In this document: positions 30,280 through 50,148 of the stretch, one piece after another | How positions within the stretch are numbered: position 1 is the first letter of the stretch | How the letters are laid out: every line of letters begins with the position of its first letter | Assembly: GCA_965644315.1 (NCBI GenBank) | Contig: CBFFRQ010000038.1 | Span: forward strand, 1-64,000 | DNA length: 64,000 nucleotides | Direction of reading: 5' to 3' | Source: Caecitellus pseudoparvulus | Taxonomy: Eukaryota > Protista > Bigyra: Bicosoecida | The notes under the pieces: model-generated | What the model was told of the DNA's origin: nothing | The model's database searches: none | The model's input: the letters and a program-made list of their open reading frames with translations, nothing else | Translations under genes and position numbers: made by a program

Positions 30280-31060
30280 TGTGCGGCGGGTCGGTACGCG
30301 GGCAGTGGTGCGTCCTCCTGCACGGCCTGTCCGACCGGCCGGTACCGCACAGGCACAGGCGGCACATCGGCGGGCTCGTGTACCGCCTGCGCGGCGGGGA
30401 AGGCCAGCGGGTCCACGGGGGCCACGAGCGCGACAGTGTGTGGGGACTGCAATGCCGGGCGGTATGCTGGGGCAGGGGCGTCCGCTTGCACCGACTGTGC
30501 GCTGGGCAGGTCATCCAGTGCTGGGTCTGGCTCCTGTGGGTCCTGTGTGGCGGGTCGGTATGCGGGGTCTGTCGGGATGTCGTTGTGTGCCCAGTGCGGC
30601 AGTGGGACGTATGCGGGATCGTCGGGGTCGAGCAGCTGTACGAGCTGTGCGGCGGGGCGGTACGCAGGCAGTGGTGCGTCGGCCTGCACCGACTGTGCGC
30701 TGGGCAGGTCGTCCAGTGCTGGGTCTGGCTCCTGTGGGTCCTGTGTGGCGGGTCGGTATGCGGGGTCTGTCGGGATGTCGTCGTGTGCCCAGTGCGGCAG
30801 TGGGACGTATGCGGGATCGTCGGGGTCGAGCAGCTGTACGAGCTGTGCGGCGGGGCGGTATGCAGGCAGTGGTGCGTCGGCCTGCACCGACTGTGCGCTG
30901 GGCAAGGCGTCCAGTGCTGGGTCTGGCTCCTGTGGGTCCTGTGTGGCGGGTCGGTATGCGGGGTCTGTCGGGATGTCGTTGTGTGCCCAGTGCGGCAGTG
31001 GGACGTATGCGGGATCGTCGGGGTCGAGCAGCTGTACGAGCTGTGCGGCGGGACGGTATG
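30280..31060 (+). repeat. Coding arrays in B2: less than one 216-bp unit, then 3 x 198 bp
   Basis: 198-bp unit starts at 30487, 30685 and 30883; nearly identical to the A1 units. Confidence 0.88.
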
Positions 31061-31359
31061 CACAGTCCACAGGCTCCACCACATGCACACAGTGTCCCGC
31101 TGGCAAAGCCGGAGCTGGCACAGGTGGGGACTCTGCCAGCTACTGCGGCACGTGTGGCGTGGGGAAGTATGCTGCAGGCCTGGGCAACACGGCGTGCACA
31201 GATTGCCCTGCTGGCCAGACAACGCCAGGCACTGGATCGACATCATCTTCAGACTGTGTGCCGGCTGCATCGGCGAGTCCCACTGTGACGATGACTCCGA
31301 CGCCAACGGGGTCGAGCTCGGCGACAGCATCAGGGACGGCGAGCGCCACGGCGTCACCC

Positions 31360-31917
31360 AGTGGCTCAGGCACGTCAGGCGTGTCGCCGTCGGCCAGTGG
31401 CTTAGGCACGCCCAGTGCATCGCCATCGGCCAGTGGCTCCGGCACGTCAGGCGTGTCCCCGTCACCCAGTGGCTCAGGCACGTCAGGCGTGTCGCCGTCT
31501 GCCAGTGGCTCCGGCACGCCCAGTGCACCGGCGTCGGCCAGCGGCTCAGGCACGCCCAGTGCATCGCCATCGGCCAGTGGCTCCGGCACGCCCAGTGCAT
31601 CGCCATCGGCCAGCGGCTCAGGCACGCCCAGTGCATCGCCATCGGCCAGTGGCTCCGGCACGCCCAGTGCATCGCCATCGGCCAGTGGCTCGGGCACGTC
31701 AGGCGTGTCACCGTCGGCCAGTGGCTCCGGCACGCCCAGTGCATCGTCATCGGTCAGTGGCTCGGGCACGTCAGGCGTGTCACCGTCGGCCAGTGGCTCC
31801 GGCACGCCCAGTGCATCGTCATCGGTCAGTGGCTCGGGCACGTCAGGCGTGTCGCCGTCGGCCAGTGGCTCAGGCACGCCCAGTGCATCGCCATCTGCCA
31901 GTGGCTCAGGCACGCCC
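31360..31917 (+). repeat. 36-bp coding minisatellite, ~16 units
   Basis: Same 12-aa stalk unit as in A1. Confidence 0.88.
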
Positions 31918-34900
31918 ACACCCACACCTTCACCCTCGTCTTCTGCCACTGCCACGCCCACCTTCACCTCTTCCCCCTCGCCCTCCACATCCACGTCGCC
32001 ATCACCTTCACACTCGCCATCCGCGTCACCCGCCCCGCCGTCGCCTTCCGTGTCACCCTCGAGCATCCCTCTGCTGGACGATGTCGTGGACGAGCGTGAC
32101 ACGACGTCGAATGGCCTGACATACCTCGATGTCGTGCCAGGCGACATTCCTGTCGTGGTGCAGGTCTTGTCTGGGTCGGGTGTGCCACCGCCATCCTCCA
32201 CAGGCCTGTCCATTCGATCAGCTGGTCAAAGTGCGACCTGGAGTGTGTCGGTGGAGTACATGGGTCACTCCGCCGCTGCAGGCGCCAGCACCAGCCAAGA
32301 CACCCAGGTGGTGCGGGCAGCCTTCCCTGCCTTGGTTGCCCGTGAGGCCGGTGGGGAGCCTGCAGCGCCATCGGCTGGCTCTCCTGCCCTGGCAGCGGAC
32401 GTGCTGCCTCGCAGTGGCACCATGCGTCAGGACGCCAGCACGCCAGTGTCGGAGGACGCCACCCTGCTCGTGTCAGTGGGGTCTGGGGGCAGTGTGCCCG
32501 ACCCAGGTGTGTACTGGTTTGACATGGTCGTGCTGGACAGCGCCACGACGGCGGAGATGTGGCGGCAGCCCTTCTTTGTGTCGGTGCGCGTGCCGCGTGG
32601 CGTGGTGTCGCCCCTGCAAGTGGCCGCTGTCGCAGCTGTGCGATCGCACGGTCATGACGACGACGGCTCGGCCAGCAGTGTTGTGAGTCGTGAAGTGTCG
32701 CTGCGCAGTGTGGGCAGCGGCCCACTGCAGTGGAGTGTGTGGCAGCCGCCCTCTGCGCCGTGCTGGATGCAGGTCAGCGCTGTGGCGGGAGACGGCTCCT
32801 GCGCCCCTCCCGCCTCCGTAGCAGTGCCGGCAGGCTGGACATGTGCAGTCCATGGTGTGGCGGCGGCTGGCTCCATCGCCCGTGTGTCGGTGGAGGTGGA
32901 CACGGCACTGCTGGATGCAGGGGTGTACGACACGGCACTGCTGGTTGTCTCCGACGACCCCCTGATGCCGACACAGCGTGTGGGTGTGCAGGTGGTGGCG
33001 TCTCCGCTGCGTGTGTGTCCTGCGTATGTGCACTTGGGCGACGTGTCTGCCAGCGCCCCCGCCAGTGGCGGTGATCTGACCCTGACCAACACTGGGGATG
33101 GAGATGTGGTGGTGCTGGGTGTCCTGCCCAGCACGGCAGATGTGCCGGCTGTGCAGGCCAGTGCTGACAGCAACTGCACTGGCGCCAGCAGTGGCACACA
33201 GGCTGTGCTGGACATGGTGGCTGCCGTGAATGACAGCCTTGTCGTGCCGGCTCAGGGTGCTCTGCGGGCAGGTGTCGCTCCACAGGTGGCCTGGCTGTGG
33301 CCCAGTGTTGGAGTGTCCCAGGTGGCGTCAACTGCTGCTGCGGCGGCGGCCGCTGTGTCTGGCCTGCCGCCTGCCGTGCAGTCACTTGCTGCCGCCGTGC
33401 AAGGTGTGAGCGGTGATCGTGCCGCGTGGTGGTCGGGCAGCCAGGACGCCGTGTACAGCTCGGGCCTGCAGGCCACGTGGCACGAGGCGGCATCCGACGC
33501 CACCCCTGGCGTGCCTGTGACCCTGGTGCAGGTGGGTGGCGAGCTGCACCTACGAGCGACAGCTCTGTACACGCCAGACACCATGCCAGCGGCAGACAGC
33601 TCTGGTGTGCTGCACGTCATCGTGTGGGAGACGGCCCGTGCCAGCCTGTCTGTGCGGTCCATTGCCGTGAGTGCCAGTCGTCGTGTGGGTGCAGTGCACG
33701 CTGCGACGTCGCCGGCGCTGCAGGTGGTGTCATCGGTGGTGGGGGAGGACATGCCAGTCCTGCTGCCGGGCGATGGTGGTGTGCCTGTGCAGGTGGCAGG
33801 AGTGGCGGGCCGTGTGACGGCGCTGCCTGTGCACCGGGTCGCCTTGACACATGGAGTGCTAGTGGGCGTGGCTGTGCTGAGGGACAGGTACGGCACGGCA
33901 CGTCCCGCAGGCGGCGATGTCGTGACGGTGATGGCCAGTGGCCGTGGGGAGCAGGGTGAGGCTGTGCCCACGTCAGGGCTCGTGTGGGTGGAGCCCCTGC
34001 CGCTGCCTGTGGGTCTCCCTGCTCTGCGCCGCATGTGCAGTGCGGCTGGCGCCAGTGCCGCTGTGCGTGATGCAGTGGGCTTGGCTGTGCCGGGGGGAGG
34101 GTGTGATGCGGTGAGTCAGGCGTGGGAGCAGGTGCAGTCGGGGGCTGGGTGGGGGTCATTGCTGGGTGGCGGGCAGCTGCTGGGCCTGTACGTGCGACCA
34201 GGCCGGCCAGGGTCTCTGGCACTCACACTGCAAGCATCTCCATCAGCATCAGGCGGCGAGCTGGGTGTGGCCCCGGCAGCGGTGGTGCTGGAGCCAGTGC
34301 AAGCGGCGGCTGGGGTGGGCGCCGTCGGTCCTGTGCAGTTGCCTGTCGTGTCAGGCGGTCCTGGCGGCCCAGCCACGCTGCATGTGCATCGCACTGTCTG
34401 CACTGCTGACGGCACCGTGGCGACAGGAGATGGTCTGGGGTGCGAGTGTCGGGCAGGCATGGTCCGCCCCAGCTCAGCAGCTGTCGTCAGTGACCACACC
34501 CTGCACACAGTGCAGTGGTCGGCATCGGAGTCACGCACTGTGCAGTGGCAAGTGGTGCGCCCAGCAGTGGTGCTGGGTCGGCAGGTGCGGTGTGTGGCGT
34601 GTCCACCTGGCACAGCCAGTGTCCTGCCCACCCTGCAGCGAAGTGGCGATGCTGGCGTGTGCAGTCGGTGTGCCGATGGCTCCTTCGCTGTGCCTGGTGG
34701 GACGCTGTGCCACCCTTGTCCCTCTCGGTCGGCGACGTGCAGCGACGGCAAGCTCGTCGTGGCACCTGGCTTTGCCCTTGTGCGGCCCTTGGAAGAGCTG
34801 CAAGCAGCGCTGCAGGCCGACGCAGGGAGCGGCAACAGCACCGACTCCATGGCCAGGGCGGTGCTGGACAACATCCAGGCATGCCCCAATGTCTTCGCGT

Positions 34901-34969
34901 GCCAGTCAGGCAGCAGTGGCAGCCAGGCGGCAGTGCGCAGGCTTGGGCAGGGCACAGGCACTGCGTCGT

Positions 34970-35118
34970 TCCCTCGTGTTGGTGCGTTGTGCGTGGCAAT
35001 CGAAATGCATTGAACTGGGCCCGCCTCGAGGCCGTCCCCTCCCCCCTCTATGCCAGCGGCCACCAGGGCTCGCTGCATCTCTTGGGGGAGGGGACGCCTC
35101 CTTGCGGCACCCGCCAAT
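34970..35118 (-). repeat. Split direct repeat B2 (149 bp)
   Basis: Appears identical to 35307-35455. Confidence 0.95.
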
Positions 35119-35129
35119 CGAGAAAAAGA

Positions 35130-35304
35130 AAAAAAAAGGAAAGAGAGTGACGAGGCCGGCTAATGACTGGTTTTGTCATGCCCGGTCCTGCCGTCGTCTA
35201 CTCTGCGTTGGGGCGGCGGGGGACAATTGTGCCACTAGCGTGGGACTGCCCGCCGCCCCTCCTGCCGGGAAACATGGTTGCCGGCTGGGGTGCCGGCAAC
35301 CTCG
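35130..35304 (-). repeat. Split direct repeat A2 (175 bp)
   Basis: Appears identical to 40613-40787. Separated from B2 by an 11-bp A-rich spacer (35119-35129). Confidence 0.95.
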
Positions 35305-35306
35305 GT

Positions 35307-35455
35307 TCCCTCGTGTTGGTGCGTTGTGCGTGGCAATCGAAATGCATTGAACTGGGCCCGCCTCGAGGCCGTCCCCTCCCCCCTCTATGCCAGCGGCCAC
35401 CAGGGCTCGCTGCATCTCTTGGGGGAGGGGACGCCTCCTTGCGGCACCCGCCAAT
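35307..35455 (-). repeat. Split direct repeat B1 (149 bp)
   Basis: Abuts A2 through the GT core at 35305-35306. Confidence 0.95.
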
Positions 35456-35460
35456 ACTTT

Positions 35461-36357
35461 TCAATGCTTGCTTCCTCCCCTGGGTGTCATGGCCTCGTGC
35501 CACAGCCTCGCCCCCTCCCCCCCCTGGGTGTAGTATCGTGCCCGGGTGGGGGAGCCAGCCGCCCAGCCCGCCGCGTGCTCCACCAAGACGTCGGGGGCCC
35601 GGCCTGTCCAGAACATATTGCCCCCGGGTCTCAGGTGGGCCAAGGACACGCCCGCTACAGCCTTCAGGATGCCTTGCAGGCTGAGCCACGCCCACCTTGG
35701 GAGCAGGCTTCCCCGCTTGTCCCGGGCCTGCTCCCGGAGGCGGTCGAAGGCCCCCGCCCACTCGGCCTGGCGCACCACCTGGATGTGGCGGTTTGCACTC
35801 AGGTGCGTTTTATCCGTGACCCTGGCCTCCACCCACTGCAGGGGGCCCGCCCGCCCGAAGTGCAACTCCTCCCATCGCAGGCCCCGGAGCTCTCCCGGCC
35901 TGCACATGCCATGAAAGCCGATGTAGATAGCTGCGGCGGCAGTTGGGGCATGCCTCCCGAGGTGTGGCCCGTCCCATGCCCGCTTCATGGCCTCCATGAC
36001 TTGTTCTTTGCTGATAGGGCGGCGGTGTTGCTCCCCTCTCCCTCGGTGGAGCCGGCGGATTGCCCGGCAGATGCTGCCGACTGTGAGCCCCAGCGGGGCT
36101 AGCGACGGGATTGGCAGGCCCAGATACCTAAAACCACCGACCCATTGCGCCAGGATCTGCTTCGCCCGATGGGGGGCCCATCTGCCTGCGGCCACGCCGC
36201 CCGTTAAGATGCCCACCATGGTCCGCGCCCTGTCCCGGGGTGCTGGAGCGGCCCTGATCAGGCCAGCAACCGCGCGAACGTACTTGACCACCGTCCCCTT
36301 TGCCAGCCTATGTTGGTGAATCCTGCTGATCGGGGACGCGGGGATGGCCCTGATCAT
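35461..36357 (-). CDS. Tyrosine recombinase of the retrotransposon
   Basis: GFHGMCRPGEL (first Arg), DKT (Lys), AHLRPGG (second Arg), AGW and RYY (Tyr) occur in the expected order. Confidence 0.88.
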   Translation of the reverse strand: MIRAIPASPISRIHQHRLAKGTVVKYVRAVAGLIRAAPAPRDRARTMVGILTGGVAAGRWAPHRAKQILAQWVGGFRYLGLPIPSLAPLGLTVGSICRAIRRLHRGRGEQHRRPISKEQVMEAMKRAWDGPHLGRHAPTAAAAIYIGFHGMCRPGELRGLRWEELHFGRAGPLQWVEARVTDKTHLSANRHIQVVRQAEWAGAFDRLREQARDKRGSLLPRWAWLSLQGILKAVAGVSLAHLRPGGNMFWTGRAPDVLVEHAAGWAAGSPTRARYYTQGGEGARLWHEAMTPRGGSKH

Positions 36358-38525
36358 CTGCCAGAAGGTCTGCTTCCTTATCCAGAGTGTGTCTGTGCAG
36401 GGCGACGGAGAGTTGAGCTGAGTGAATCCACGCGGTGCCCGCCCCGGCCTTTCCCGACGGCCCTACGTCTAGGGACACATCATGCCACCGCTCAGCGGCG
36501 CTGCTTCCCCCTGCTGATACCTCCAGCTCGGCTGGTTGCCCTGGCGGGAGGCCGAGCGCTGCCGGTGTGCTGCTATCCACCCTTTCGGGGTGGCTGAGGG
36601 CGTCCGCCCGCCAATTCAGGCTCCTCGGGATCCACCGAGGCGCCAAGTGGACGTCCAAAACGCGGGAAACCCGCTCGAGGACCCCGCAGACGCGCGTGAG
36701 TTCACGGCTGTGCTTGCTGTACCCTCGTCGCGCCAGCGCCACCGCTGCCTGGCTGTCCGCAGCTAGGCATAGCAGCAGCGGCCCCGGCTCGGGAAAAACA
36801 TGCCGCGCCATTGCCATAGCCAAGGCGATTGCGTACAGCTCCAGCATCGTGGAGGCTCCCACGAGCTCCTCGCCCGGGGCTGTGCCGGGGATGCGCATGG
36901 ACGCGTACCAAGCGGAGTCTGTGCGTTCTCCTGGCCCTGCCCACCTCGACACTGTTGCCCCCAGCCCGCCTTCCCCCGACGCGTCGCACGAGCCAAAGAG
37001 GGCGGCGCGCCACCTGCTTGACAGTGGGGAGAGCGGGCGCATCGGGCCCGTCGATAACGGCCCACCGAGGGCCTCAAGGAGGGTCCGCAGGGCCCCGTGC
37101 GACGCCGGGGGGACAGGCACGAGAGCGCCGGGGGGCCGACGCGGTACTTGTGTGTGCGCATGGTGTCGTACAAGAGCGACAGCGTTTGTTTTGCGTGGGG
37201 CACCACGGCCGACAGGCCGTGCAAGCGCCCTGTGACCGCGGCGAAAACGCGCTTGGGGATGGTGGAGCAAGCGCCGAGGCGATTAAGGACCGCGGCCAGC
37301 TGCCACCGCAGCTGAGTTCGTTTGGCTTGAGGACACTCAAGGTACACCCCACACGGGGCACACCTGACCACCATCCCCAAGTACTGAACGACGCGCTGTG
37401 GCCCTTGCGTCTTCTTGCGCGACACCCGGAAGCCCACGTCCTCGAACAGTTGAGTTATCTTGGGCACGATCGATGGCCGTGGCCCCAACGTAGCTCCCCC
37501 AAGCCCGACGTCGTCTACGTACACAACCACATGCCCTGCTGGGAACGCCGCTTCGATCTTGGCGCCCAGAAGTCCAGAAAAAAAGCAGAAAATGGCCCCG
37601 GCCGGGCTGTACCCGAAGGCCATCCGAAGCATGCGGAAGGCTGGCCTGCCCTGGGCGAGCATGGTGAACAGTCCGGCGCCCGACGGAGCGATGGGGATGG
37701 CCGTGTACCCTGCTTCCACGTCCAGGACAACACAGTCCGAGTTCGGCGGGAGGCGCAGCGCCCAGCTCTCCAGCGTGGGGTAGTGGAATGGGGGGCTCAC
37801 TGAGGCCTGGTTGACGGCTGCCAGATCGTACACCACCCGCTGCTTGGCCCGGAACAGGCGGCTCGGGCGGGCGGGCGCGCGGGAAGAGCTGGCGGCCTGC
37901 ACCGCCTCGCCTGGGTTCGCAGCAGCCCACTGTCGCAGAGCTTCGTCGCTGACGCCCGGCTGGGGGGCCCATGTCGTGACAACGAAGGCAGAAGCGGCTG
38001 GCCCCCCATCTTTCGGTGCTGCTGCAGCTGCTGGGGGGTGACCGGCTGCAGCACGCGCGCAGCCGCGAAGGCGTCATAGGCCGCTGCCACCGCCCGCTCG
38101 TCGTGCGGCTGCAGCACGTATGCCGAGGACGGGGATGCCGCTGCCGGGGGGCGGCGGAACAGCAGCCAAGCGGGGTCCCACCCGCGCAGCGTGACCACGG
38201 TGAGCAGTCGCATGGCTGCGCACCGCTCAAGCTGCCGTAATCTGGAAGTGGTCTCGCCGCATGCGGGACACACGTCAGCGTGGGCCTCCTGGCAACCCCA
38301 GTATGAGACCACGGGGTGGGGGCCCCAGTCCAAGCCCCCACGCAAGATGTCCTCGAAGAGCCCCGGTGGAGTCCAACAACGGTCCCCATGCAGCTGCTGG
38401 ACCATTGATTCGATGAGCACGGCCATGGCGCGGTGGTCTGTCGAGAGCGGGGCGGCAGCCCTCCACTCCACGGGCACGGCCCGGTACCCCGTGGTCGCTC
38501 TCACCACCGCGCTCCGGCCCACCTC
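36308..38525 (-). CDS. Pol (reverse transcriptase plus DIRS-type RNase H), split by two single-base frameshifts near 38002-38007 and 37130-37135
   Basis: RT motifs SAFVV, KQRVVYDL..VN, VLDVEAGY, MAFGYSPA, YVDD and YLG. RNase H motifs CDAS, LELYAI, ADSQAA and WIPRSLNWRADALS. Adding one base to each 6-nt homopolymer run makes a single ORF. Confidence 0.9.
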
Positions 38526-40608
38526 CTAGAGGCTGAGAGCTGCCTCCACCATGGCCGTGGTGACAGCGCGGGGCTGCATGCGCCGCTGGAAGTCACGTCC
38601 CTTGGATGCCACCTTCCGCTCCCACTGGCGCACCAGCATGGCCACTGCCTGCGCCTGGGTAAGTTCTGCGGGCTTACCTCCGACTGTGTGGGTCCGGCGC
38701 AGGTGGGCCACATGCTGGGCCAGGCGTGGGCAGGATGCCAGCGACCGGCGCCGCCGGTCGGATCCGACGCACCCGGGGCACCACACGAATGTGCTCGGGT
38801 CGTCCTGCCGGTACAGCCCCGCGGGAGGGCCACGAGCGGGGGTTTGCGCCGGGCCGCCCCCCGCACCTGGCATCGGTGTGGCGGCGGCCCCGGCCGCCCA
38901 TGCCTCGCGCGCCAGCGAGCTGGCCACCAGTGCTTGCCCCGTCGCCGACGCCATCATGACAATGGTGGCGTTAGTGCGGAACGTGGCCACCCAGGAGGCC
39001 CACGTCAGCTGGGCCCATCGCCTGCGCTGGCCTTCGGGCAACGCAGCGGCGGTCTGCGCCACGGCCCGCACTGCGATTGTGATCAGGAGTGCGCACGCCA
39101 TGGCTCGGCACAGGCCCCGCTGGTCTGCCAGGGCGGGCACCTCGGACGCCCACTTCCACCAGAACGCTCGGAGGGAGCGGTGGAGGTCGTCGGAAGGCGC
39201 CGTCAGCAAGTCCCTGGTCATCGCAGCAAGCCACCAAGCGCCCCCACGGTTGCCCAGCATGTGGCATGCCGACAGGGCACCCGCCCCAGTTACTGCCACT
39301 AGATGGGTTGGGTCAACTGTAACTTCCACCCTCCCTTGCACCAGGCGTACAGCAGTCACTACGTCCATAGCGTCGTCCATCATGACCGACGCGGACGGCG
39401 GGGCTACCTCATCGCCGGGGGCTGTGAGCCAGGACGGGTCGCCGGGAGCGGGCACGCGGGGCGAGTGGGGGGGGAGCTGGCGGGACAGGAACGTACCTGA
39501 CGGCACTGGGCCCGTTGCTGCGGGCACCTCTCGTGCAGCAGCCTCAGCCATCTCGACAGCCACCGTGGTCAAGGCGTCTGTGGTCCCCGCAGCGAAAACT
39601 GCCCCCAAGGCTGACAGGCGGTCCCGGGCCACCGCCGACGAGGGGTGTGCGGTCGGCCCAATGACCCGCAGCGCGCCTACAGTGACCAGTACCTCGTCGG
39701 CTGGCGACGACCGACCGCTGTTCTCCCCCATGTGACCGAAAACAGCCGACCCGCCTTCGGGGTGGACTGCCGGCGAGGCTCCGCCGCCCCACGGGGGAGG
39801 GGGGCTGCGGGCTATAGGCCGCCCTGTGCCTCTTGGAGGCCGGGGGGTGACCCGGGGCCGCCGCACGGGGCTGTAACCGGGCGGCATCCGGTGTGGTGCC
39901 CGGGAAAACGGGAAAGAACGGGGCGCCGGCATCGTCGTCGCCAAAGTCGTCGTCGCCCGCCAGCGCGGCCTCCAGGACCCGCTGCAAATGCATCACGATG
40001 TCGTCGGGGGTGAGGTCGGGGGGAATACCGTTGAGTCTGCACCATGCGGCGAAGCGCCGTGGAGGCCAAGCGGAGAGGGCGTACGGCGATGTCTCCTCCG
40101 TTGCCAAGCCCACGTAGAACTGCAGCTGCACGGCGACGTCCTCGCTCGGCACCGTCGCTCCCCTCTGCAGGAACCACGTAAGCACTGTGGCGGGATCTTG
40201 CGGGAGGTCGCCTGCGACTGCGTCCGGCTGGGTCGGGCGCGGGGGTAGGTGCGGGCCGTAGGGCGTGCCACTGCTCGCACCGCGCGGACGGGTTCGCTTC
40301 GTGCCGTGCCCCCGTGGTGAGCCGCCTGCGCGATGAGGGGCACCGTCAGCGGGGAGGCGGAAAGCTCTGCCCGCAATGAGGGATCGCATGCGATCTGCCC
40401 GGAATCCCTCGGGCACCTCCCGGAGGCGCCAAGCGGCCTCCATCTTACCAAAATCCTCAGAATCCGCCCACTTCAGCCAGTACTCGAACTCCTGCTCCGT
40501 TATGAGCGCCTTGGCTTGCTTGGCGGAGTTGACAGACATCATTTTGTCGTGGATGTCCTCCCAGCTTCCGCCCTCCGTGTCGCTGGAAGCTGGATCATCC
40601 GATGCCAT
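38526..40608 (-). CDS. Gag-like ORF1 (two overlapping frames, probable frame change near 39793-39804)
   Basis: ATG 40608 lies just after repeat A1 (MASDDPASS...). The downstream frame ends with a Cys/His motif (WCPGC-x12-C...H..H...H) and TAG at 38526-38528. Gag identity rests on position and this motif only. Confidence 0.6.
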
Positions 40609-40612
40609 CTCG

Positions 40613-40787
40613 AAAAAAAAGGAAAGAGAGTGACGAGGCCGGCTAATGACTGGTTTTGTCATGCCCGGTCCTGCCGTCGTCTACTCTGCGTTGGGGCGGC
40701 GGGGGACAATTGTGCCACTAGCGTGGGACTGCCCGCCGCCCCTCCTGCCGGGAAACATGGTTGCCGGCTGGGGTGCCGGCAACCTCG
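40613..40787 (-). repeat. Split direct repeat A1 (175 bp), element 5' end
   Basis: Appears identical to 35130-35304. Confidence 0.95.
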
Positions 40788-43700
40788 GTCTCGCGTGACG
40801 ACGTGCTCAGCGTCAGGTTTGTGCAGTGAGGGTGTGGGTGTGTCTGCCAGCTCCAACAGCAGCGATGTCGGGGCGCCTGCCCTGTCGTCGTGGGAGGGCA
40901 TCCTGGACCTCATTGGCGCTGTGCAGCCGTCCCGCTGTGCGCCTGGGCACGAATCGCTGCCCGGCACTGCTGCCATGTGCACGGGGTGTGCGCATGGGTG
41001 GGTGCACTCGCCTCCAGTGGCAGGTGCCGCGGGCTCGTGCCGCTCATGCAGCACATGGGAGGGCAGTGTGTTGAGCATGTGCCTGAGCCTGGCAGTGTAC
41101 GGTGCGGTGCTGCTGGGCACGGTGTACTCGTGGCATGTTGTGGCTACAGCGGTGGCGGAGGAGGGTGGGGGCGCGGGCCAGGGTGGAGAGACTGCCAAGT
41201 CTGCTGTCGGCGGGAAGCAGGTCGCTGTGCAGGCCCAGGTCAACCCCATGTACCAGAGCACAACACGAGGGGCCAAGGGTGACACTGGGACTGTGCTGCC
41301 AGACGACAAGGCGGCCCGACCCGGCACGCCACACGCTGAGGGGGGTGATGTGCAGGGTCCCCTGCTGCGGGCATCCGCTGGCGTGCTGCTGGGCCTGCAC
41401 ATCATGCTGTCAGGGCTGGTGGCAGATGTCCTGGTGGATGGGCCGGGCGGGGGTGTGGGGCAAGACAGCATCGTGTGGCAGCGGGAGGTGACGGGGGGTG
41501 TCGTGCCCATCCCTGTGCACTCTGCATCGTGGGCCTGTGCGGCCCAGGCCATGCTGCGTGGCGTGTCAGGGGATACTGTCATGGCCTCCCCCGCCGCTCG
41601 GCAGGTGCTGACGTATGGCCTGCTGCCCCTGGTGTCGGTGGTGTTGGGGGCAGCTCTGGGTGGTGGGCTGGGATGTGCTCTGTCGACACAGTGGCGCTGT
41701 CGGTCACGCCCTGCAGGCAGGGGCGTGGGCGGAGTCAGCGGTGGTGTTCCATTGGCGTGGCATGCGGGCGTGCTGGCAGGGGTGTTGTCCCTGCCTCGCA
41801 GCATCACGGGGCTGGTGCGCATCGCCAGCGTGTGGGATGTGGCCCATGGCGGGTCTCGCCTGGTGTCCGAGTGGGGCATTGAGGCAGGCAGTCCTGAGCA
41901 CTGGCGCTTGATCGGCGCATCCGTCGTGTTGGTGGTGGTGTGGTTGGGCCTGGCAGTGGCGGGCCTGGTGGCTCTGGGGCGGCGCCTGGTGCAGGGCGAC
42001 GCCAGGGCCAGTGCCGGCGGTGCGACATCCCCCACGTGTGCATGTGCACGTCAAGTGCCGCTTCCAGTGCCACTGCCCATGTCATGGTCCCTGCTCACGT
42101 CACGGCGGTCATCGCCGCTGCTGCCGCCGTGGACGCCCCCTGCCTTGACGCCCCTGCTGCTGCCGAGTGTGCTGTGGGTGTGGACGATTGTGGCAGGTGT
42201 GACGAATGCGCTGGTGCCTGTGGGCGCAGGCGCGACGTTCTCCCTTGCCGTGGCCATGATTGGCATGTGGCTGTTCCACGAGGTGCTGCGCACGTTCAGT
42301 GTGGCGGAGGACCTCGTGAACGCCAAGCTGCGCCGTGCCAAGCGCAAGGCCCGCAGCAGCTCACACAGGCCAGGCATGGACAGCATCCGACAGGCCAGTG
42401 TGGATGCGGTAGGGCGTCGTGTACACACCTTGCTGCGTCTGGTGGGGTCGGATGTCGGTCCACCAGCGCAGGGTGGGGCCAGTGTGGGTGGGCCCCAGCA
42501 GGCTGGCTTCAAGTCCCTGCGCGCTCTGCAGCGCCTGGCATGGCAGGGCCGCACACTGCATGTCCTCATGTCGCTGGTGCTGGGATGTGTCACTGCACAG
42601 GCAGGGTGTGCGTACTTGCTCTTCACGTACGACACGGCGGCGTTCGTGGAGAACTCCCGGTATGCGCAGAGCATGGAGGCGACCTTTGACGTCGTGCAGG
42701 CGTCTCGAGCCACGACGTGGGTGCTGGCGTGTGCATTCTGGGCGCCCATCGTGGTGTTGGTGGCGTGCCTGGTGCTGGGGCGGGCCGCCTACTCGCTCAG
42801 CGGCCTGGTGGGCCAGGGTGTGGGGAGGGCAAGCGCAGCGCTGTGGCGTTGCGTGTCCAAGCAGTGCACTGCTGCACCACGCGGCAGGCGGGCGCTGTCT
42901 TTGGGTGCAGGTGGGGGCGGCTTGCTGCAGGTGGGGAGCCAGGCCAACCCGATGTTGGCTGGGAAGGAGCGTGCGGCATCGTTGAGCACTGCCACGCTGC
43001 GTGGTGGTCAGGGGCGTGTGCCGGCTGATGGCGTTGTGGCCGGCACAGGTCGCGCGGCACGTGACGCTGGTGCAGAGCAGGGCAGGGACAGGGGCCTCAG
43101 TACGTCTGTCACGTCGTTTGCAGCTCGCCGGGCCCGCCCGTCGTCCCTTGCAACTCGCCGCATCTTGCACGGAGCCCGTGGCTCGCGCGGCACCGTGGCG
43201 CCTGGAGGTCGCAGCGTGGGGTCGCTGTTGATGCTGGCAGCATGTGAGCATGCTCAGGTACGGGCTGTGCGGCCTCGTCGGCGCACCCAGCGGGGCGATG
43301 GGGGTGGGGGGCAGTCTGTGCGTCGCCAGCGCCCAGTGAGTGCCACTCGGCGTGGGCTGCACCTGTGATCGGTGACAAGTGGGTCGGAGTGAAGCAGGAC
43401 TGCATAGAAGGCTTTCAAAATGATGTGTATTGTCTGCATCGTCACTTCCTGAATGCGTTTCAGGTGTGACGAAGCTCCTTGTTTGCAAGCCGTGAGACCC
43501 AGCCCCAGCTTGTCAGAGCTTTTCCCCTGGATCCAAGCCTTTCTTGGTGAAGACCTCAAGAAAGTGCAAAGGTCAATGTGCTTGTAGTTGGCGCTATTGT
43601 TGTGGCTCATGCAAGTGATGCTTGAGGGTGAAAAGCCCGTGCACCCCGAGCCGCTCTGGGCAGGCGCAGGACAGTCGAAGAACGGAAGACCCCTGCGCCG

Positions 43701-44487: not shown

Positions 44488-47400
44488 ATGTTGAGGTTCA
44501 TGTGGTGGATCATTGCAGGCACAGCCGCATTGGCCGGCGCAACGTGCACGTGTGAGTCTGGCCACTCTTTGCAACTGGCCAAGCACAGCCGCAGCTGCTC
44601 CCTGATGAGAAGCTGGTCACTCGAAGCATGCTGTGCACTTTTGGTCCCCCCTTTTGCTGCTGCAGGTGGCGCTGGCACGTACGTCTCTGGTTGCGGCAGC
44701 CCTCCTGGTCCCCAAAAGCGGCTCCTCCCTGGGCAAAGCGAGTACTCCAGTTCTAGCGAAAGTGCTTACTCGTACACATCCCAAGTGGAATACCTTATGC
44801 CACTGCAAGGCCTTGCTTCGCCAGCTGATGCGGTCCGGAAAGTGCTGTCAAGGCAGGGTCCGAGTCTGAGTGGCCTGCCAGCTCAAAGGCCCATGCCACG
44901 CAGCGAGGGAACTGCAATACCATCAGCCCAGGCTGAAGCCGCTGCAAGTTTCGCAGATTGGGTGACACGGACCTCGCCTGATGAAGGCGACTCCGGTGCT
45001 TATGAGCGGAGTTCTCAGATGGCAAGCCACGCAGACCGTTTCAGCCGGAGGCTATACACCTGCGAACAATGCCAGAAAGGGAGGTACAAGACGGGGTCAA
45101 CCAGCGCCACTGTTTGCACATTCTGCGCTGCTGGCAAGTATGGCACACTCACTGGTGCAACATCTGCCTCAGCCTGCTACGTCTGTCCAACTGGGAGAGC
45201 GGCGGGGTTCCCAGGTCAAAGCGCGTGCGTGGATTGCGGGGTGGGCAGGTATGCTGCAACCACGGGCCACTCTATCTGTACGTTATGCGCGGCGGGAAGA
45301 TATGTGGGTTCGACTGGTGCGTCGAACTGCTTGGGATGTCCACTTGGAAAGTTTGCCATTCCAGGCGCCTCGTCGTGCACCGACTGTGCTCAAGGGAGGT
45401 ACCAAGACTCCACACCTGGCTCCACTTGCAAGGAATGCGCAGCTGGGAAGAAGAACCCTTCCTCTGGATCCACAAGCAGCACTGCATGCACCAACTGCCT
45501 GCCCGGGTACTCGTCTGGAAGTGGACAAGGCTTGTGTCTCATTTGTGCCGCGGGTCGGTACGCGGGCAGTGGTGCGTCCTCCTGCACAGCCTGCCCGACC
45601 GGCCGGTACCGCACGGGCACAGGCGGTACATCGGCGGGCTCGTGTACTGTCTGCGCGGCGGGGAAGGCCAGCGGGTCCACGGGGGCCACAGCTGAGAGCA
45701 CGTGTGACACATGTACAGCTGGCACATTCGCCGGTGCTGGGTCGGCGTCATGCTCGAGCTGTGCGGCGGGTCGGTACGCGGGCAGTGGTGCGTCCTCCTG
45801 CACAGCCTGCCCGACCGGCCGGTACCGCACGGGCACAGGCGGTACATCGGCGGGCTCGTGTACTGTCTGCGCGGCGGGGAAGGCCAGCGGGTCCACGGGG
45901 GCCACAGCTGAGAGCACGTGCGACACATGTACAGCTGGCACATTCGCCGGGGCTGGGTCGGCGTCATGCTCGAGCTGTGCGGCGGGTCGGTACGCGGGCA
46001 GTGGTGCATCCTCCTGCACGGCCTGCCCGACCGGCCGGTACCGCACGGGCACAGGCGGTACATCGGCGGGCTCGTGTACTGTCTGCGCGGCGGGGAAGGC
46101 CAGCGGGTCCACGGGGGCCACAGCTGAGAGCACGTGTGACACATGTACAGCTGGCACATTCGCCGGTGCTGGGTCAGCGTCATGCTCGAGCTGTGCGGCG
46201 GGTCGGTACGCGGGCAGTGGTGCATCCTCCTGCGCGGCCTGCGCGACCGGCCGGTACCGCACAGGCACAGGCGGCACATCGGCGGGCTCGTGTACTGCCT
46301 GCGCGGCGGGGAAGGCCAGCGGGTCCACGGGGGCCACCAGCGCGACGGTGTGCAGTACATGTGCAGCTGGGACATTCGCCGGTGCTGGGTCGAGCAGCTG
46401 TGCGAGCTGTGCGGCGGGGCGGTATGCAGGCACTGGTGCGTCGGCCTGCACCGACTGTGCGCTGGGCAGGTCGTCCAGTGCTGGTGCTGGCTCCTGTGGG
46501 TCCTGTGCCGCGGGTCGGTATGCGGGGTCTGTCGGGATGTCGTCGTGTGCCCAGTGCGGCAGTGGGACGTATGCGGGATCGTCGGGGTCAAGCAGCTGTA
46601 CGAGCTGTGCGGCGGGTTGGTATGCGCAGTCCACAGGCTCCACAACATGCACACAGTGTCCCGCCGGCAAAGCCGGAGCTGGCACAGGTGGGGACTCTGC
46701 CAGCTACTGCGGCACGTGTGGCGTGGGGAAGTACGCTGCAGGCCTGGGCAACACGGCGTGCACACAGTGCCCTGCAGGCCAGACAACGCCAGGCACTGGA
46801 TCGACATCATCTGCAGACTGTGTGCCGGCGGCATCGGCGAGTCCAACTGTGACAATGACTCCGACGCCGACAGGGTCGACCTCGGCGACCGCATCGGGAA
46901 CGGCAAGCAGTACTGCGTCACCCAGTGGCTCAGGCACGCCCAGTGCATCGCCATCGGCCAGTGGCTCCAGCACGCCCAGTGCATCACCATCGGCCAGTGG
47001 CTCGGGCACGTCAGGCGTGTCACCGTCGGCCAGTGGCTCCGGCACGACTAGTGCATCGCCATCGGCCAGTGGCTCCAGCACGCCCAGTGCATCACCATCG
47101 GCCAGTGGGTCGGGCACGTCAGGCGTGTCGCCGTCGGCCAGTGGCTCCGGCACGCCCAGTGCATCGCCATCGGCCAGTGGGTCAGGCACGTCAGGCGTGT
47201 CACCATCGGCCAGTGGCTCAGGCACACCCAGTGCATCACCATCGGCCAGTGGGTCAGGCACGTCAGGCGTGTCGCCATCGGCCAGTGGGTCAGGCACGCC
47301 CAGCGCATCGCCATCCGCCAGTGGGTCAGGCACGTCAGGCGTGTCGCCGTCGGCCAGTGGCTCCAGCACGCCCAGTGCATCACCATCGGCCAGTGGGTCA

Positions 47401-50148
47401 GGCACGTCAGGCGTGTCGCCGTCGGCCAGTGGCTCCGGCACGCCCAGTGCATCACCGTCGGCCAGTGGCTCCGGTACGCCCAGCGCATCGCCATCCGCCA
47501 GTGGGTCGGGCATGTCAGGCGCGTCCCCGTCGGCCAGTGGCTCCAGCACGCCCAGTGCATCACCATCGGCCAGTGGCTCAAGCACGCCCAGTGCATCGGC
47601 ATCCGCCAGTGGCTCGGGCACGTCAGGCGTGTCACCGTCGGGCAGTGGCTCCGGCACGACTAGTGCATCGCCATCGGCCAGTGGCTCCGGTACGTCCAGT
47701 GCATCACCGTCAGCCAGTGGGTCAGGCACCCCCAGTGCGTCATCAACTACGAGTTGCTCGGCAACTTCTAGTGTAATGCCCACCATAAGCGAGGCAGTTG
47801 CTCCAACTGGCTCAAGCAGCCCACGTGTGCTTCCATCACATCTGTCTTGGGCTGTGTCCTCAGACGTTCGGAATCATCACACGGCCAACTCTTCTGACAC
47901 TCTGTACCTCCCTGTTCTCGTCCGAGACGGAGTTTCATGCGTCAGAAACTGCCACAGTTTCGACGCGGTGGTTTTGCCGTGCCCACGCCGTGGATCATGC
48001 GCGATCGGCGAGGCTTTGGAAGATGTCCAGGGTTGCAATGTTGGTCATTCTGGTGTTGCGTGCGGGTCCTGCGCGCTTGGGTGGAGTGCGCCTTCGGCTT
48101 GTGACGCGTGCAAGGAGTGTCCGAGCAGTGTTCTTCCCCACTTTGTTGCAAGCGCGGTCCCTGCCGCTCTGCAGCTGGTCGCGGCCCTGGCGAGTGCTTG
48201 TTTCGCTGTACACGGGTATGTGAAAGCTCCAGAGAGGGTCGCTACGAACCTGTTCAGCGGCGGGCTGAGACTTGGTCTGTGGTACATTGGCATGGCGGCT
48301 CAAATTGGGCACCTTCATGGACAATCTGGAGCATCTTTGCAAGCTTCTTCCCAGTCACTTGGGCAGTGGGTGAGCACATGTGGCATGGCACGTCCATGGG
48401 CGTCTGGCGTTGAAGTGGGAGCGAACGCTTCCTTGTATGAAAACGTCCAATCCAACGAGGGATCTTCAAGCATTCTAGACATATTAAGTGCGGCGTCGGG
48501 TGGCACTGTAGCTGCATTTGAAGCCGACATCGGGTGCGCTTTCGGTGGCGGCGACCCGAGCAGCCCAACGTCGCCAGGAGCCTTGTTTCTCCTCGGCTCT
48601 AGCTTGTGCCTGCTTGCGATGGGTGCGATGACAGTCTGTGTCCAATCTCGATGCGCGTCCAGTGCTTGGCCAGGGCTTTTGTTGCTTCCGCCTGTGCTGT
48701 ATGTCAACGCTGCACCAGGGTTCCTCCGTGGCCTGTCAAAAGTATGCGGGCTTCAGCCTCAGTGGGGTGGGCTTGACACCCCTGACGGCGCACCAGGATT
48801 TGCGGATGGGATAGTTCCTTTTGCAAGTGCTTTGATTTTGCACGTGGTTGTCCTTACAGCCGGAACAGTAGCCTATCTTTCGTGGAAGCAGTGGTGTGGG
48901 CATGCTCGAGCCGGACGGCCAGGCGCGACACTCCGTGGCCTTCTTGCCAAGGGGTATCGCACACAGTTCACAGTCCAGCAAGCCAGAGAGCTTGCAACTT
49001 CAGTTCTTAAGAAGCCAGCCCTTGTTCGAGCGGCTGTTGCTGAGGCTGAGACAGCCCAGGCTTCTTGCTGTGGAGCTGCGTGGTTGTTGCCGACCCAGGC
49101 TTTCGTTGGCGTTCAAATGGCCGTTGTTGTCATTGCAACTGGAGCATCTTGGTTCACCGTGGACGTTATCACTCGACTTGTGAGCGTTGGTGCTGGCCTC
49201 AGCTTCAGCATGGCGTTGGTCTTTGTGCGGCGACCTTGGGTGTTGGGTGAGATCACTGACTTGGACGTGCTTGCTCACGCTGGACTTCTCATTCATGTGG
49301 TGTGTGCCGGCCTCAATGCGCTCACCCCTGCTACTGCATCATGGACGGCAATCATCACCAGCGCAACACATGTACTGGTGTTGGTGGGGATCTTTTTGGC
49401 TGTTCTGCGCGGGTACAGCCAGGCGGCCCGAGCTGCATTGGCCAAGGTGGGGCGCCGGATCCGGAGCTGGTTTCCGGAGCTAGGTCCAGCTGAACAACCA
49501 ACGCTCACTGCAGGAGAGTTGGGGGACGTGGCCAACAGCAATGTCCCGGGACTTCACCAGATCGTTTGGGCTTTGCTGATGCGCGGGTTGCGGTGTGGCG
49601 TGAAGCCTGCCCGGACCCAACACACGGTCGACCTTGGTGGCGTCATGAGCATGCTTGGGGAGCAGGACCAGGTGGGCGCTGAGGCAACAAAGCAAATCCT
49701 CGGTACAGCAGGGCACAGCTTAGTTCGCGTGCCAGCCTCATCGGCAGGTTTGGCAAGCTTGTCTGCGCCCCAAGCTCAAGCCGTTAGCAACGCGCTTAGG
49801 CCTTCATCGGCAGCCAGTGTCACACGAAACCCGATGTTCGTCAAGAAGGCGAAGCAAAGAAAACAGCTGCCTCGTCCCCTGGCATCCTGCAGCCCCGTGC
49901 CTGGTAGAGAGAGCTTGGGCCTGATTCATCGGGATTCGCTTTCATCTCTCGCCGAATTAACGGCTGCGTCATCAACTCGGCAGGTAGTCCTCCCAAAGCG
50001 GGGTTCGCTGCAGCACTTGCAGCTCCAACTCGACACGAGCAGCGAGATAGCAGGAGGATTCCGGCCCAGGAGAGTGAGTGGTGCTCAGGGCACTGAGGGG
50101 CGTCGAAGCTCATCCGTGAGACGGTTGTCAACAAGACCACGGAAGTGA
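44488..50148 (+). CDS. Cys-rich repeat surface protein A2; in-frame intron 44552-44665
   Basis: Signal peptide MLRFMWWIIAGTAALAGATCT, then a phase-1 GTGAGT...TGCAG intron at the same Cys codon as in A1 and B2. The C-terminal domain is highly similar to A1; the N-terminus differs. Confidence 0.85.
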   Translation: MLRFMWWIIAGTAALAGATCTCESGHSLQLAKHSRSCSLMRSWSLEACCALLVPPFAAAGGAGTYVSGCGSPPGPQKRLLPGQSEYSSSSESAYSYTSQVEYLMPLQGLASPADAVRKVLSRQGPSLSGLPAQRPMPRSEGTAIPSAQAEAAASFADWVTRTSPDEGDSGAYERSSQMASHADRFSRRLYTCEQCQKGRYKTGSTSATVCTFCAAGKYGTLTGATSASACYVCPTGRAAGFPGQSACVDCGVGRYAATTGHSICTLCAAGRYVGSTGASNCLGCPLGKFAIPGASSCTDCAQGRYQDSTPGSTCKECAAGKKNPSSGSTSSTACTNCLPGYSSGSGQGLCLICAAGRYAGSGASSCTACPTGRYRTGTGGTSAGSCTVCAAGKASGSTGATAESTCDTCTAGTFAGAGSASCSSCAAGRYAGSGASSCTACPTGRYRTGTGGTSAGSCTVCAAGKASGSTGATAESTCDTCTAGTFAGAGSASCSSCAAGRYAGSGASSCTACPTGRYRTGTGGTSAGSCTVCAAGKASGSTGATAESTCDTCTAGTFAGAGSASCSSCAAGRYAGSGASSCAACATGRYRTGTGGTSAGSCTACAAGKASGSTGATSATVCSTCAAGTFAGAGSSSCASCAAGRYAGTGASACTDCALGRSSSAGAGSCGSCAAGRYAGSVGMSSCAQCGSGTYAGSSGSSSCTSCAAGWYAQSTGSTTCTQCPAGKAGAGTGGDSASYCGTCGVGKYAAGLGNTACTQCPAGQTTPGTGSTSSADCVPAASASPTVTMTPTPTGSTSATASGTASSTASPSGSGTPSASPSASGSSTPSASPSASGSGTSGVSPSASGSGTTSASPSASGSSTPSASPSASGSGTSGVSPSASGSGTPSASPSASGSGTSGVSPSASGSGTPSASPSASGSGTSGVSPSASGSGTPSASPSASGSGTSGVSPSASGSSTPSASPSASGSGTSGVSPSASGSGTPSASPSASGSGTPSASPSASGSGMSGASPSASGSSTPSASPSASGSSTPSASASASGSGTSGVSPSGSGSGTTSASPSASGSGTSSASPSASGSGTPSASSTTSCSATSSVMPTISEAVAPTGSSSPRVLPSHLSWAVSSDVRNHHTANSSDTLYLPVLVRDGVSCVRNCHSFDAVVLPCPRRGSCAIGEALEDVQGCNVGHSGVACGSCALGWSAPSACDACKECPSSVLPHFVASAVPAALQLVAALASACFAVHGYVKAPERVATNLFSGGLRLGLWYIGMAAQIGHLHGQSGASLQASSQSLGQWVSTCGMARPWASGVEVGANASLYENVQSNEGSSSILDILSAASGGTVAAFEADIGCAFGGGDPSSPTSPGALFLLGSSLCLLAMGAMTVCVQSRCASSAWPGLLLLPPVLYVNAAPGFLRGLSKVCGLQPQWGGLDTPDGAPGFADGIVPFASALILHVVVLTAGTVAYLSWKQWCGHARAGRPGATLRGLLAKGYRTQFTVQQARELATSVLKKPALVRAAVAEAETAQASCCGAAWLLPTQAFVGVQMAVVVIATGASWFTVDVITRLVSVGAGLSFSMALVFVRRPWVLGEITDLDVLAHAGLLIHVVCAGLNALTPATASWTAIITSATHVLVLVGIFLAVLRGYSQAARAALAKVGRRIRSWFPELGPAEQPTLTAGELGDVANSNVPGLHQIVWALLMRGLRCGVKPARTQHTVDLGGVMSMLGEQDQVGAEATKQILGTAGHSLVRVPASSAGLASLSAPQAQAVSNALRPSSAASVTRNPMFVKKAKQRKQLPRPLASCSPVPGRESLGLIHRDSLSSLAELTAASSTRQVVLPKRGSLQHLQLQLDTSSEIAGGFRPRRVSGAQGTEGRRSSSVRRLSTRPRK
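45544..46644 (+). repeat. Coding arrays in A2: 4 x 216 bp, then 1 x 198 bp
   Basis: Counted from the translation. Confidence 0.88.
46924..47745 (+). repeat. 36-bp coding minisatellite, ~23 units
   Basis: Same 12-aa stalk unit, about twice the A1 copy number. Confidence 0.88.

Follow-up and report, generated by a model that had tools for sequence, protein, structure and literature searches.

The 64,000-nucleotide stretch of Caecitellus pseudoparvulus DNA analysed here (positions 1 to 64,000 of contig CBFFRQ010000038.1, assembly GCA_965644315.1; hereafter the window) contains one copy of a split-direct-repeat tyrosine recombinase (YR) retrotransposon. The element is 5,820 bp long, occupies positions 34970-40789 on the minus strand and sits in an exon-like host open reading frame (ORF). 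It is of the Ngaro type, and it was inserted without duplication of the target, probably by YR-mediated exchange at a very short core which the target shared with the junction between the b and a repeats of the element. A split-direct-repeat YR retrotransposon had been named in the original prediction for this DNA, and the identification stands: the layout was read on the minus strand and both a reverse transcriptase (RT) and a YR were identified.

The filled site and an empty site lie in the two copies of a tandem segmental duplication of about 35 kb (window 1-23,200 versus 40,790-64,000), and the insertion of the element postdates this duplication. Four junction windows were inspected (19-34, 34961-34976, 40781-40797 and 35298-35313). 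The empty site reads TGCGTC-GT-CTCGCGTG (GT at 25-26), the left junction TGCGTC-GT-TCCCTCG (GT at 34968-34969), the right junction AACCTCG-GT-CTCGCGTG (GT at 40788-40789) and the internal junction AACCTCG-GT-TCCCTCG (GT at 35305-35306). The four att-like sites had been predicted in this form, and re-reading the sequence at all four positions gave the same letters. A single GT is thus found in the empty site and another at either end of the insertion, and the internal b1/a2 junction has one as well. Beyond these 2 bp the target and the junction show no similarity. The empty site is unique within the window.

When the element is conceptually excised, 34944-34969 joined to 40790 onward equals window 1-65 base for base. 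Over a longer distance the joined flanks and the paralogue are identical at 2,563 of 2,624 aligned positions (about 97.7% over 2.6 kb). The insertion is therefore base-exact at both ends, with neither loss of target nor filler, and comparison of the empty with the filled site reveals no target-site duplication at this one insertion. Excision also leaves the host frame as one open ORF of 2,675 codons, as expected from the earlier claim that precise excision would restore the host gene.

In the sense orientation the order is a1 - gag-like ORF - TAG - RT/RNase H - YR - b1|a2 - 11-nt spacer - b2 (Table 1). Repeat finding returned two direct repeat pairs, both 100% identical: 34968-35118 with 35305-35455 (151 nt) and 35130-35306 with 40613-40789 (177 nt). 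The two pairs overlap by exactly the GT at 35305-35306, and b1 directly abuts a2 with no spacer. Apart from a single inverted pair, which is internal and weak, all repeat pairs in the element are direct. The element is present in a single copy within the window, and its b1/a2 junction was also found in a Logan contig (L002, SRR8404393). An A1-ORFs-B1A2B2 arrangement of split direct repeats defines Ngaro-, PAT- and VIPER-like elements (PMC8969392, PMC6681497, PMC13465315). Neither Rfam nor a tRNA search, each applied to the element as well as to the entire window, gave a match.

Table 1. Coordinates of the element, its insertion site and the interrupted host gene (window positions; "original" labels are those of the original prediction).
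Feature	Positions	Strand	Basis or remark
Paralogous empty site, in the upstream copy of the tandemly duplicated host gene	1-60	+	equals joined insertion flanks over 65 nt
Host ORF, 5' part (Ephrin_rec_like Cys-rich repeat protein)	29521-34969	+	Pfam PF07699, E = 3e-32; cut after first base of a codon
GT of left junction (element 3' end in sense orientation)	34968-34969	.	junction sequences, repeats, conceptual excision
b2, terminal copy of 3' split repeat (original A1)	34970-35118	-	100% identical to 35307-35455
Unique 11-nt spacer between a2 and b2	35119-35129	-	adjoins sense-strand T-run of variable length
a2, internal copy of 5' repeat (original B1)	35130-35306	-	includes junction GT 35305-35306; 100% identical to 40613-40789
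b1, internal copy of 3' repeat (original A2)	35307-35455	-	b1/a2 is the internal circle-junction-like site
Tyrosine recombinase ORF, 298 aa, last ORF of the element	35464-36357	-	fold, profile, conserved residues
pol (RT-RNase H)	36311-38525	-	RVT_1; three frames in window copy
In-frame TAG between gag-like ORF and pol	38526-38528	-	families 1, 2, 3, 4 share the frame, the TAG and a conserved peptide after it
Gag-like gene	38529-40662	-	split: ORF1 40662-39547, ORF2 39992-38529
a1, 5' terminal repeat (original B2)	40613-40789	-	includes GT 40788-40789
Host ORF, 3' part	40790-43368	+	frame continuous across conceptual excision

The a repeat has two further peculiarities. On the sense strand it ends in a T-run of variable length (window 35119-35150 and 40602-40625; also 11580-11612 of the related contig L006). 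It also contains a perfect hairpin with a 10-bp stem and a 6-nt loop (GGTTGCCGGC ACCCCA GCCGGCAACC, at 40759-40784 and 35276-35301; z = -2.8 and -3.8), which begins 5 nt inside the repeat, beside the junction. The related contig L005 has a hairpin of 6-7 bp at a similar distance from its junction, and L006 has none that is convincing.

The proposed steps of insertion are deduced from the published model for DIRS and Ngaro elements; the layout, the coding capacity, the exact insertion and the shared dinucleotide are read directly from the window. Reverse transcription would regenerate the ends of the element, with b1/a2 serving as the template for the b2/a1 junction of a circle. A Cre-like YR would then carry out a conservative exchange between the circle junction and a genomic site with which it has a very short core in common, here 2 bp. 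Such an exchange at a shared core would leave each end of the insertion with one core copy, and its exact reversal would reconstitute the host gene.

The extent of the core can be read in more than one way. On the plus strand the junction trinucleotide of the window family is GTT (AAC in the sense orientation), and that of the target is GTC (GAC). The original prediction limited the crossover identity to GT (AC on the element sense strand). The identity shared at this site is indeed just GT, but a 3-bp core with one mismatch would fit as well as a 2-bp core.

Several points weigh against insertion by YR exchange. The circle, the excision product and the activity of the YR are predicted and none was observed. 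By analogy, the cDNA (complementary DNA) of Dictyostelium DIRS-1 would be an unfavourable precedent, being mainly linear and single-stranded, with a circle junction that could not be amplified (Malicki et al., PMC7192593). Only one flanked insertion of the window family is available. If insertion needed no homology, one event would show agreement over 2 nt or more by chance with a probability of about 0.16 at equal base frequencies or about 0.19 at this GC content (our own calculation from base composition), so that on its own the GT identity does not rise statistically above chance. The empty site is a paralogue and not an allele, about 2.3% diverged overall, and its left flank is only 26 nt long because the window begins 26 nt upstream of it. 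The window copy carries three frame-breaking indels and, in its present state, cannot have supplied its own proteins. Lastly, the clade to which the YR belongs does not conserve the His that is usual in the HxxR motif.

The main rival explanation is that linear cDNA, with ends set by replication, was captured at a chromosomal break by end-joining with 2-bp microhomology, in which case the YR defines no core. This is unlikely, but the single insertion with its chance-level match would fit it, as would the similarity between target and junction that stops at 2 bp, the mostly linear single-stranded intermediates of DIRS-1 (PMC7192593) and the length of the identity among relatives, which varies (2, possibly 3, and 4 nt). 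End-joining accounts less well for a target joined to the base at both ends with nothing lost or filled in, and for the intact YR ORF kept in every related family. Junctions of the related families also bear on it.

The most informative is family 3 (L006-L013), which encodes an ORF1 of 719 aa, a pol of 792 aa and a YR of 359 aa and has the same a1-ORFs-b1/a2-spacer-b2 layout, with an a2-b2 spacer of 19 nt. Four independent 5' flanks (L006, L007, L008 and L012) diverge exactly where a begins. The internal junction reads GCGAGG/GTATTGTG (the slash marks the b/a boundary), and the one available 3' junction reads GCGAGG-GTAT-CAAGCG, so that 4 nt past b2 repeat the start of a. Three of the four independent insertions begin with the GTAT of the internal junction. 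The fourth, L012 (position 331), starts ATATTG instead of GTATTG, with a mismatch at the first core base. In L007 the 5' flank CTGCTAGG (219-226) and the b end CTGCGAGG are alike at 7 of 8 positions. The L012 and L007 sequences hint that the target can contribute the first core base and that integration favours sites resembling the junction; the L007 flank, together with the 4 nt of the 3' junction, speaks against end-joining.

Other families contribute less. In family 4 (L005) the junction GGTGGTA/TTGGC can be compared with the 3' end GGTGGTA/CCAGT, but the core cannot be delimited because L005 lacks a1. Family 5 (L014-L019) has the same split-repeat layout with an a2-b2 spacer of 17 nt; three different 5' flanks abut CAACCCCC, and it has no 3' flank. 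The related families give partial support to integration at a junction core. Their identities of 3-4 nt and the one mismatch at the first core base, set beside the single insertion of the window family, leave the invariant GT core expected in the original prediction a hypothesis, so that the earlier interpretation is only partly supported.

It is very improbable that the GT is a 2-bp target-site duplication produced by a staggered cut in the manner of an integrase or transposase. GT does stand at both ends of the insert, but the internal b1/a2 junction carries it as well, so the element owns one; the one copy of the empty site becomes two in the filled site, and nothing was duplicated because the element already had one GT and the empty site held the other. 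For random duplications the GTAT start of three of the four family 3 insertions would be unexpected, and the element proteins have no Pfam match to a DDE integrase (rve). A rearranged long terminal repeat (LTR) retrotransposon, or an assembly artefact mimicking split repeats, is also very improbable, for although assemblers struggle with such repeats and the short-read contigs L002 and L010 were permuted by repeat collapse, the same layout recurs in independent families and several independent contigs, an intact paralogue is collinear with the flanks, the recombinase is of the YR and not of the rve integrase type, and the host ORFs in the window are intact.

The two permuted contigs have the circular order YR-b-a-ORF1, and L002 lacks element positions 727-940. 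The permutation was considered as evidence for circles and rejected, as repeat collapse in short-read assembly explains the order most simply; nor is it taken as a sign of tandem copies.

The last ORF of the element is identified as a tyrosine recombinase by profile, modelled fold and conserved residues. It has no Pfam match (Phage_integrase, PF00589, is absent even at E = 5), and as a single-sequence query it matched nothing in the PDB. A profile of 16 sequences matched XerA (E = 0.006) and Cre (E = 0.011) best. With an AlphaFold model of the window YR (pLDDT 77.5) as the Foldseek query, the top 31 matches were all Cre or Tre (best E = 3.9e-6, about 275 aligned columns, TM about 0.55), followed by XerA, lambda integrase and IntI. 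R153, K183, R243, W265 and Y276 are invariant across the 16-member alignment of the clade, in which varied residues replace the HxxR His. The same 16 members have a DKTH motif in which the catalytic-loop Lys comes before an invariant H185, and R112 is also invariant.

Cre and the window YR thus have in common a two-domain fold over about 275 columns and the conserved Arg-Lys-Arg-Trp-Tyr set. They differ in that sequence identity is about 15% and the HxxR His is not conserved in the window clade. Classical tyrosine recombinases have overlaps of 6-8 bp; here the apparent overlap is 2-4 bp, and in contrast to Cre/loxP the junction is not evidently flanked by inverted binding arms.

For the broken ORFs of the window copy, the analysis used either the separate pieces or the intact homologues that occur naturally in L001, an ENA metagenome scaffold, and in L002. 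Pfam finds RVT_1 in pol (E = 4e-8 to 8e-8), with the RT domain at about 37369-37869 and RNase H at about 36586-36990. A profile of eight pol proteins matched the RTs of foamy virus, Ty3, caulimovirus and Moloney murine leukemia virus (MMLV) in the PDB at about 3e-8, and YxDD is invariant in the eight sequences. The RNase H assignment is weakly supported: D504, E552, D580 and D631 are invariant in the eight pols, Pfam gives no match, and the matches to RNase HI in the PDB are weak (E about 0.05). In the intact pol proteins (728-733 aa) RVT_1 is the sole Pfam domain and only about 90 residues follow RNase H; a methyltransferase domain was not detected in them by Pfam, and the protein has no room for one. 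No protease was detected in the element proteins.

In all four families whose gag-like/pol boundary is available, a TAG closes the gag-like ORF and pol follows it in frame (besides the window: L003 1822-1824, L006 7509-7511 and L005 1464-1466). The pols of these families are 24-46% identical, and the peptide just past the stop is conserved (E/D/Q-V/L-G/A-x-x-A-V-V). The stop context of L005 is TAG CAA TTA, which we take to be the tobamovirus-type leaky-stop motif. The shared frame, the conserved peptide and this context suggest stop-codon readthrough between gag and pol, and in the intact relatives pol is most likely made by readthrough of the conserved in-frame UAG.

The gag-like gene is broken into two overlapping ORFs in the window copy because of a 2-nt deletion near 39805, where a C-run has C6 versus C8 in L002, which reads through. 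A single ORF of at least 607 aa in the sister family (family 2, L003) is homologous to both ORF1 and ORF2. The C-terminal part of ORF2 (window 38600-38700) contains a conserved motif FVWCPxC...C(P) with nearby His residues, as does L003 at about 1540-1650; from its sequence it could be a zinc-knuckle-like nucleic-acid-binding element.

The pol gene is broken too. L001 (99.05% identical to the window element over 3.27 kb) and L002 (about 99.3% over 4.7 kb) each hold a single intact pol ORF, of 728 and 732 aa respectively. Relative to both, the window copy is missing 1 nt near 38005 and 1 nt near 37136, which leaves its pol in three frames. A further loss, of 3 nt from a G-run near 35525, is in frame. 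All these indels (C8 to C6, loss of A, C7 to C6 and the 3 nt of the G-run) lie in or beside homopolymer runs. The host ORFs are long and intact in both duplicate copies, so the indels are more likely real than assembly noise. A frameshifted copy needs proteins supplied in trans unless it decayed afterwards; the window copy was therefore probably either mobilised in trans or decayed after insertion. This also qualifies the earlier suggestion, drawn from the identical repeat pairs, that the insertion is recent. It is plausible, but zero differences over 328 nt of repeats bound the divergence only to roughly <1%, and the three frame-breaking indels have to be set beside it.

The YR lineage is sparsely represented in sequence collections. 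When 1.84 billion cluster representatives were scanned in full with HMMER and the YR profile, 21 proteins reached E <= 0.001, and 14 of these E <= 1e-10. Because the profile finds just 21 clusters the lineage is regarded as divergent, in agreement with the original prediction, which had described the proteins as such. None of the ten relatives looked up carries a name; two are NCBI records, and the others derive from metagenome or Logan assemblies. None of the ten that were scanned reaches the Pfam Phage_integrase threshold (best 21.5 bits versus a cut-off of 27.1). Three of the YR relatives are RT-YR fusions. The members of the lineage come nearly all from metagenome contigs, some with flanking eukaryote-type genes.

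Other searches added little. Exact-sequence look-ups of the window ORF1 and YR ORF returned no record. In a word-index search the RT query found P0001 only, and the YR query P0002 and P0003 only; an ALG10-like protein of the host, used as a third query, had no match. Viral contigs, searched by protein and by junction DNA, held no copies, and JGI metagenome contigs, searched by repeat-start pattern and by pol protein, held no further flanked copies of the window family.

Among the known groups the element is placed as Ngaro-like by its architecture, and not as PAT-, DIRS1- or VIPER-like, because it has split direct repeats, no methyltransferase, protease or DDE integrase was detected, and only the short stretch after RNase H remains. 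Ngaro-like elements (zebrafish, fungi, Xenopus, Cafeteria burkhardae; as defined in PMC3266345, PMC13465315 and PMC8547959) share with it the A1-ORFs-B1A2B2 arrangement, the order gag-like - RT/RNase H - YR, the absence of a methyltransferase domain, a length of about 6 kb and GC-rich copies inside protist genes. However, Ngaro YRs are reported to match PF00589 (PMC8547959, PMC13465315) and the window YR does not; as the profile finds so few clusters, the abundant vertebrate and fungal Ngaro YRs lie beyond its detection. The conserved in-frame TAG between gag-like ORF and pol and the unique a2-b2 spacer are further differences. Identity with the Ngaro elements of Cafeteria burkhardae was considered and not confirmed: the four published types differ in length and have Pfam-recognisable YRs.

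PAT-like elements (PAT, kangaroo, TOC) also combine split direct repeats with RT/RNase H and a YR, but they carry a methyltransferase domain, which was not found in the window element, and may have the YR inverted (PMC3266345). VIPER-like elements have the YR ORF upstream of RT/RNase H, whereas in the window element it is downstream of pol. LTR retrotransposons have two identical LTRs, an rve integrase and a target-site duplication of 4-6 bp, and the window element has none of these.

DIRS1-like elements follow the same logic as proposed here: the circle junction is templated by internal sequence and recombined by the YR with a short stretch of the genome identical to it, leaving no target-site duplication (PMC3266345, PMC7192593). 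In the model of Piednoël et al. the junction is 3 bp long (PMC3266345), and their table of trinucleotides lists mostly NTT with AAC-type circle junctions (PMC3266345). Malicki et al. proposed that species-specific circle-junction trinucleotides may define integration sites, with one copy at each end (PMC7192593). The window trinucleotide AAC/GTT is one of the types reported for DIRS1-like elements, but only two of its three bases are shared with the target. The inverted terminal repeats, internal complementary region and methyltransferase of DIRS1-like elements were not found in the window element.

The integration mechanism itself has thus been published for DIRS1-like elements, and the window provides a tidy single example, with no new principle; the present evidence amounts to one example which agrees with the existing model. 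What is new, as judged from the sequences, is the lineage, a very divergent Ngaro-like family in a small clade. Tentatively, the element and its 20 detectable YR relatives may represent an undescribed deep lineage with a Cre fold without the HxxR His, readthrough of a conserved UAG, and integration that would need as little as 2 bp of identity. It has compact, apparently active relatives, it adds to the diversity of tyrosine recombinases known from eukaryotes, and it makes stop-codon readthrough a candidate strategy of expression in the DIRS order.

To our knowledge the integration of a YR retrotransposon has never been reconstituted and is deduced from terminus sequences. The filled site, the empty site and the internal junction described here are concrete substrates for determining the position of strand exchange, the minimal core and the reversibility of the reaction. 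If true, a requirement for 2 bp of identity would be far below the overlap of the classical enzymes.

The tandem duplication contains other genes. Its two copies are 91-98% identical and hold paired intact intronless genes, among them one for a kinase of 1,111 aa and others with ORFs of 762, about 500 and about 650 aa. The interrupted host gene belongs to a family of giant Ephrin_rec_like / NCD3G Cys-rich ORFs in the window (3539-9013, 29521-34969 + 40790-43368, and 44488-50148). These giant ORFs hold internal tandem repeats of 36, 198 and 216 nt, for example at 4283-5446, 5294-5989, 6059-6772 and 31210-32031.

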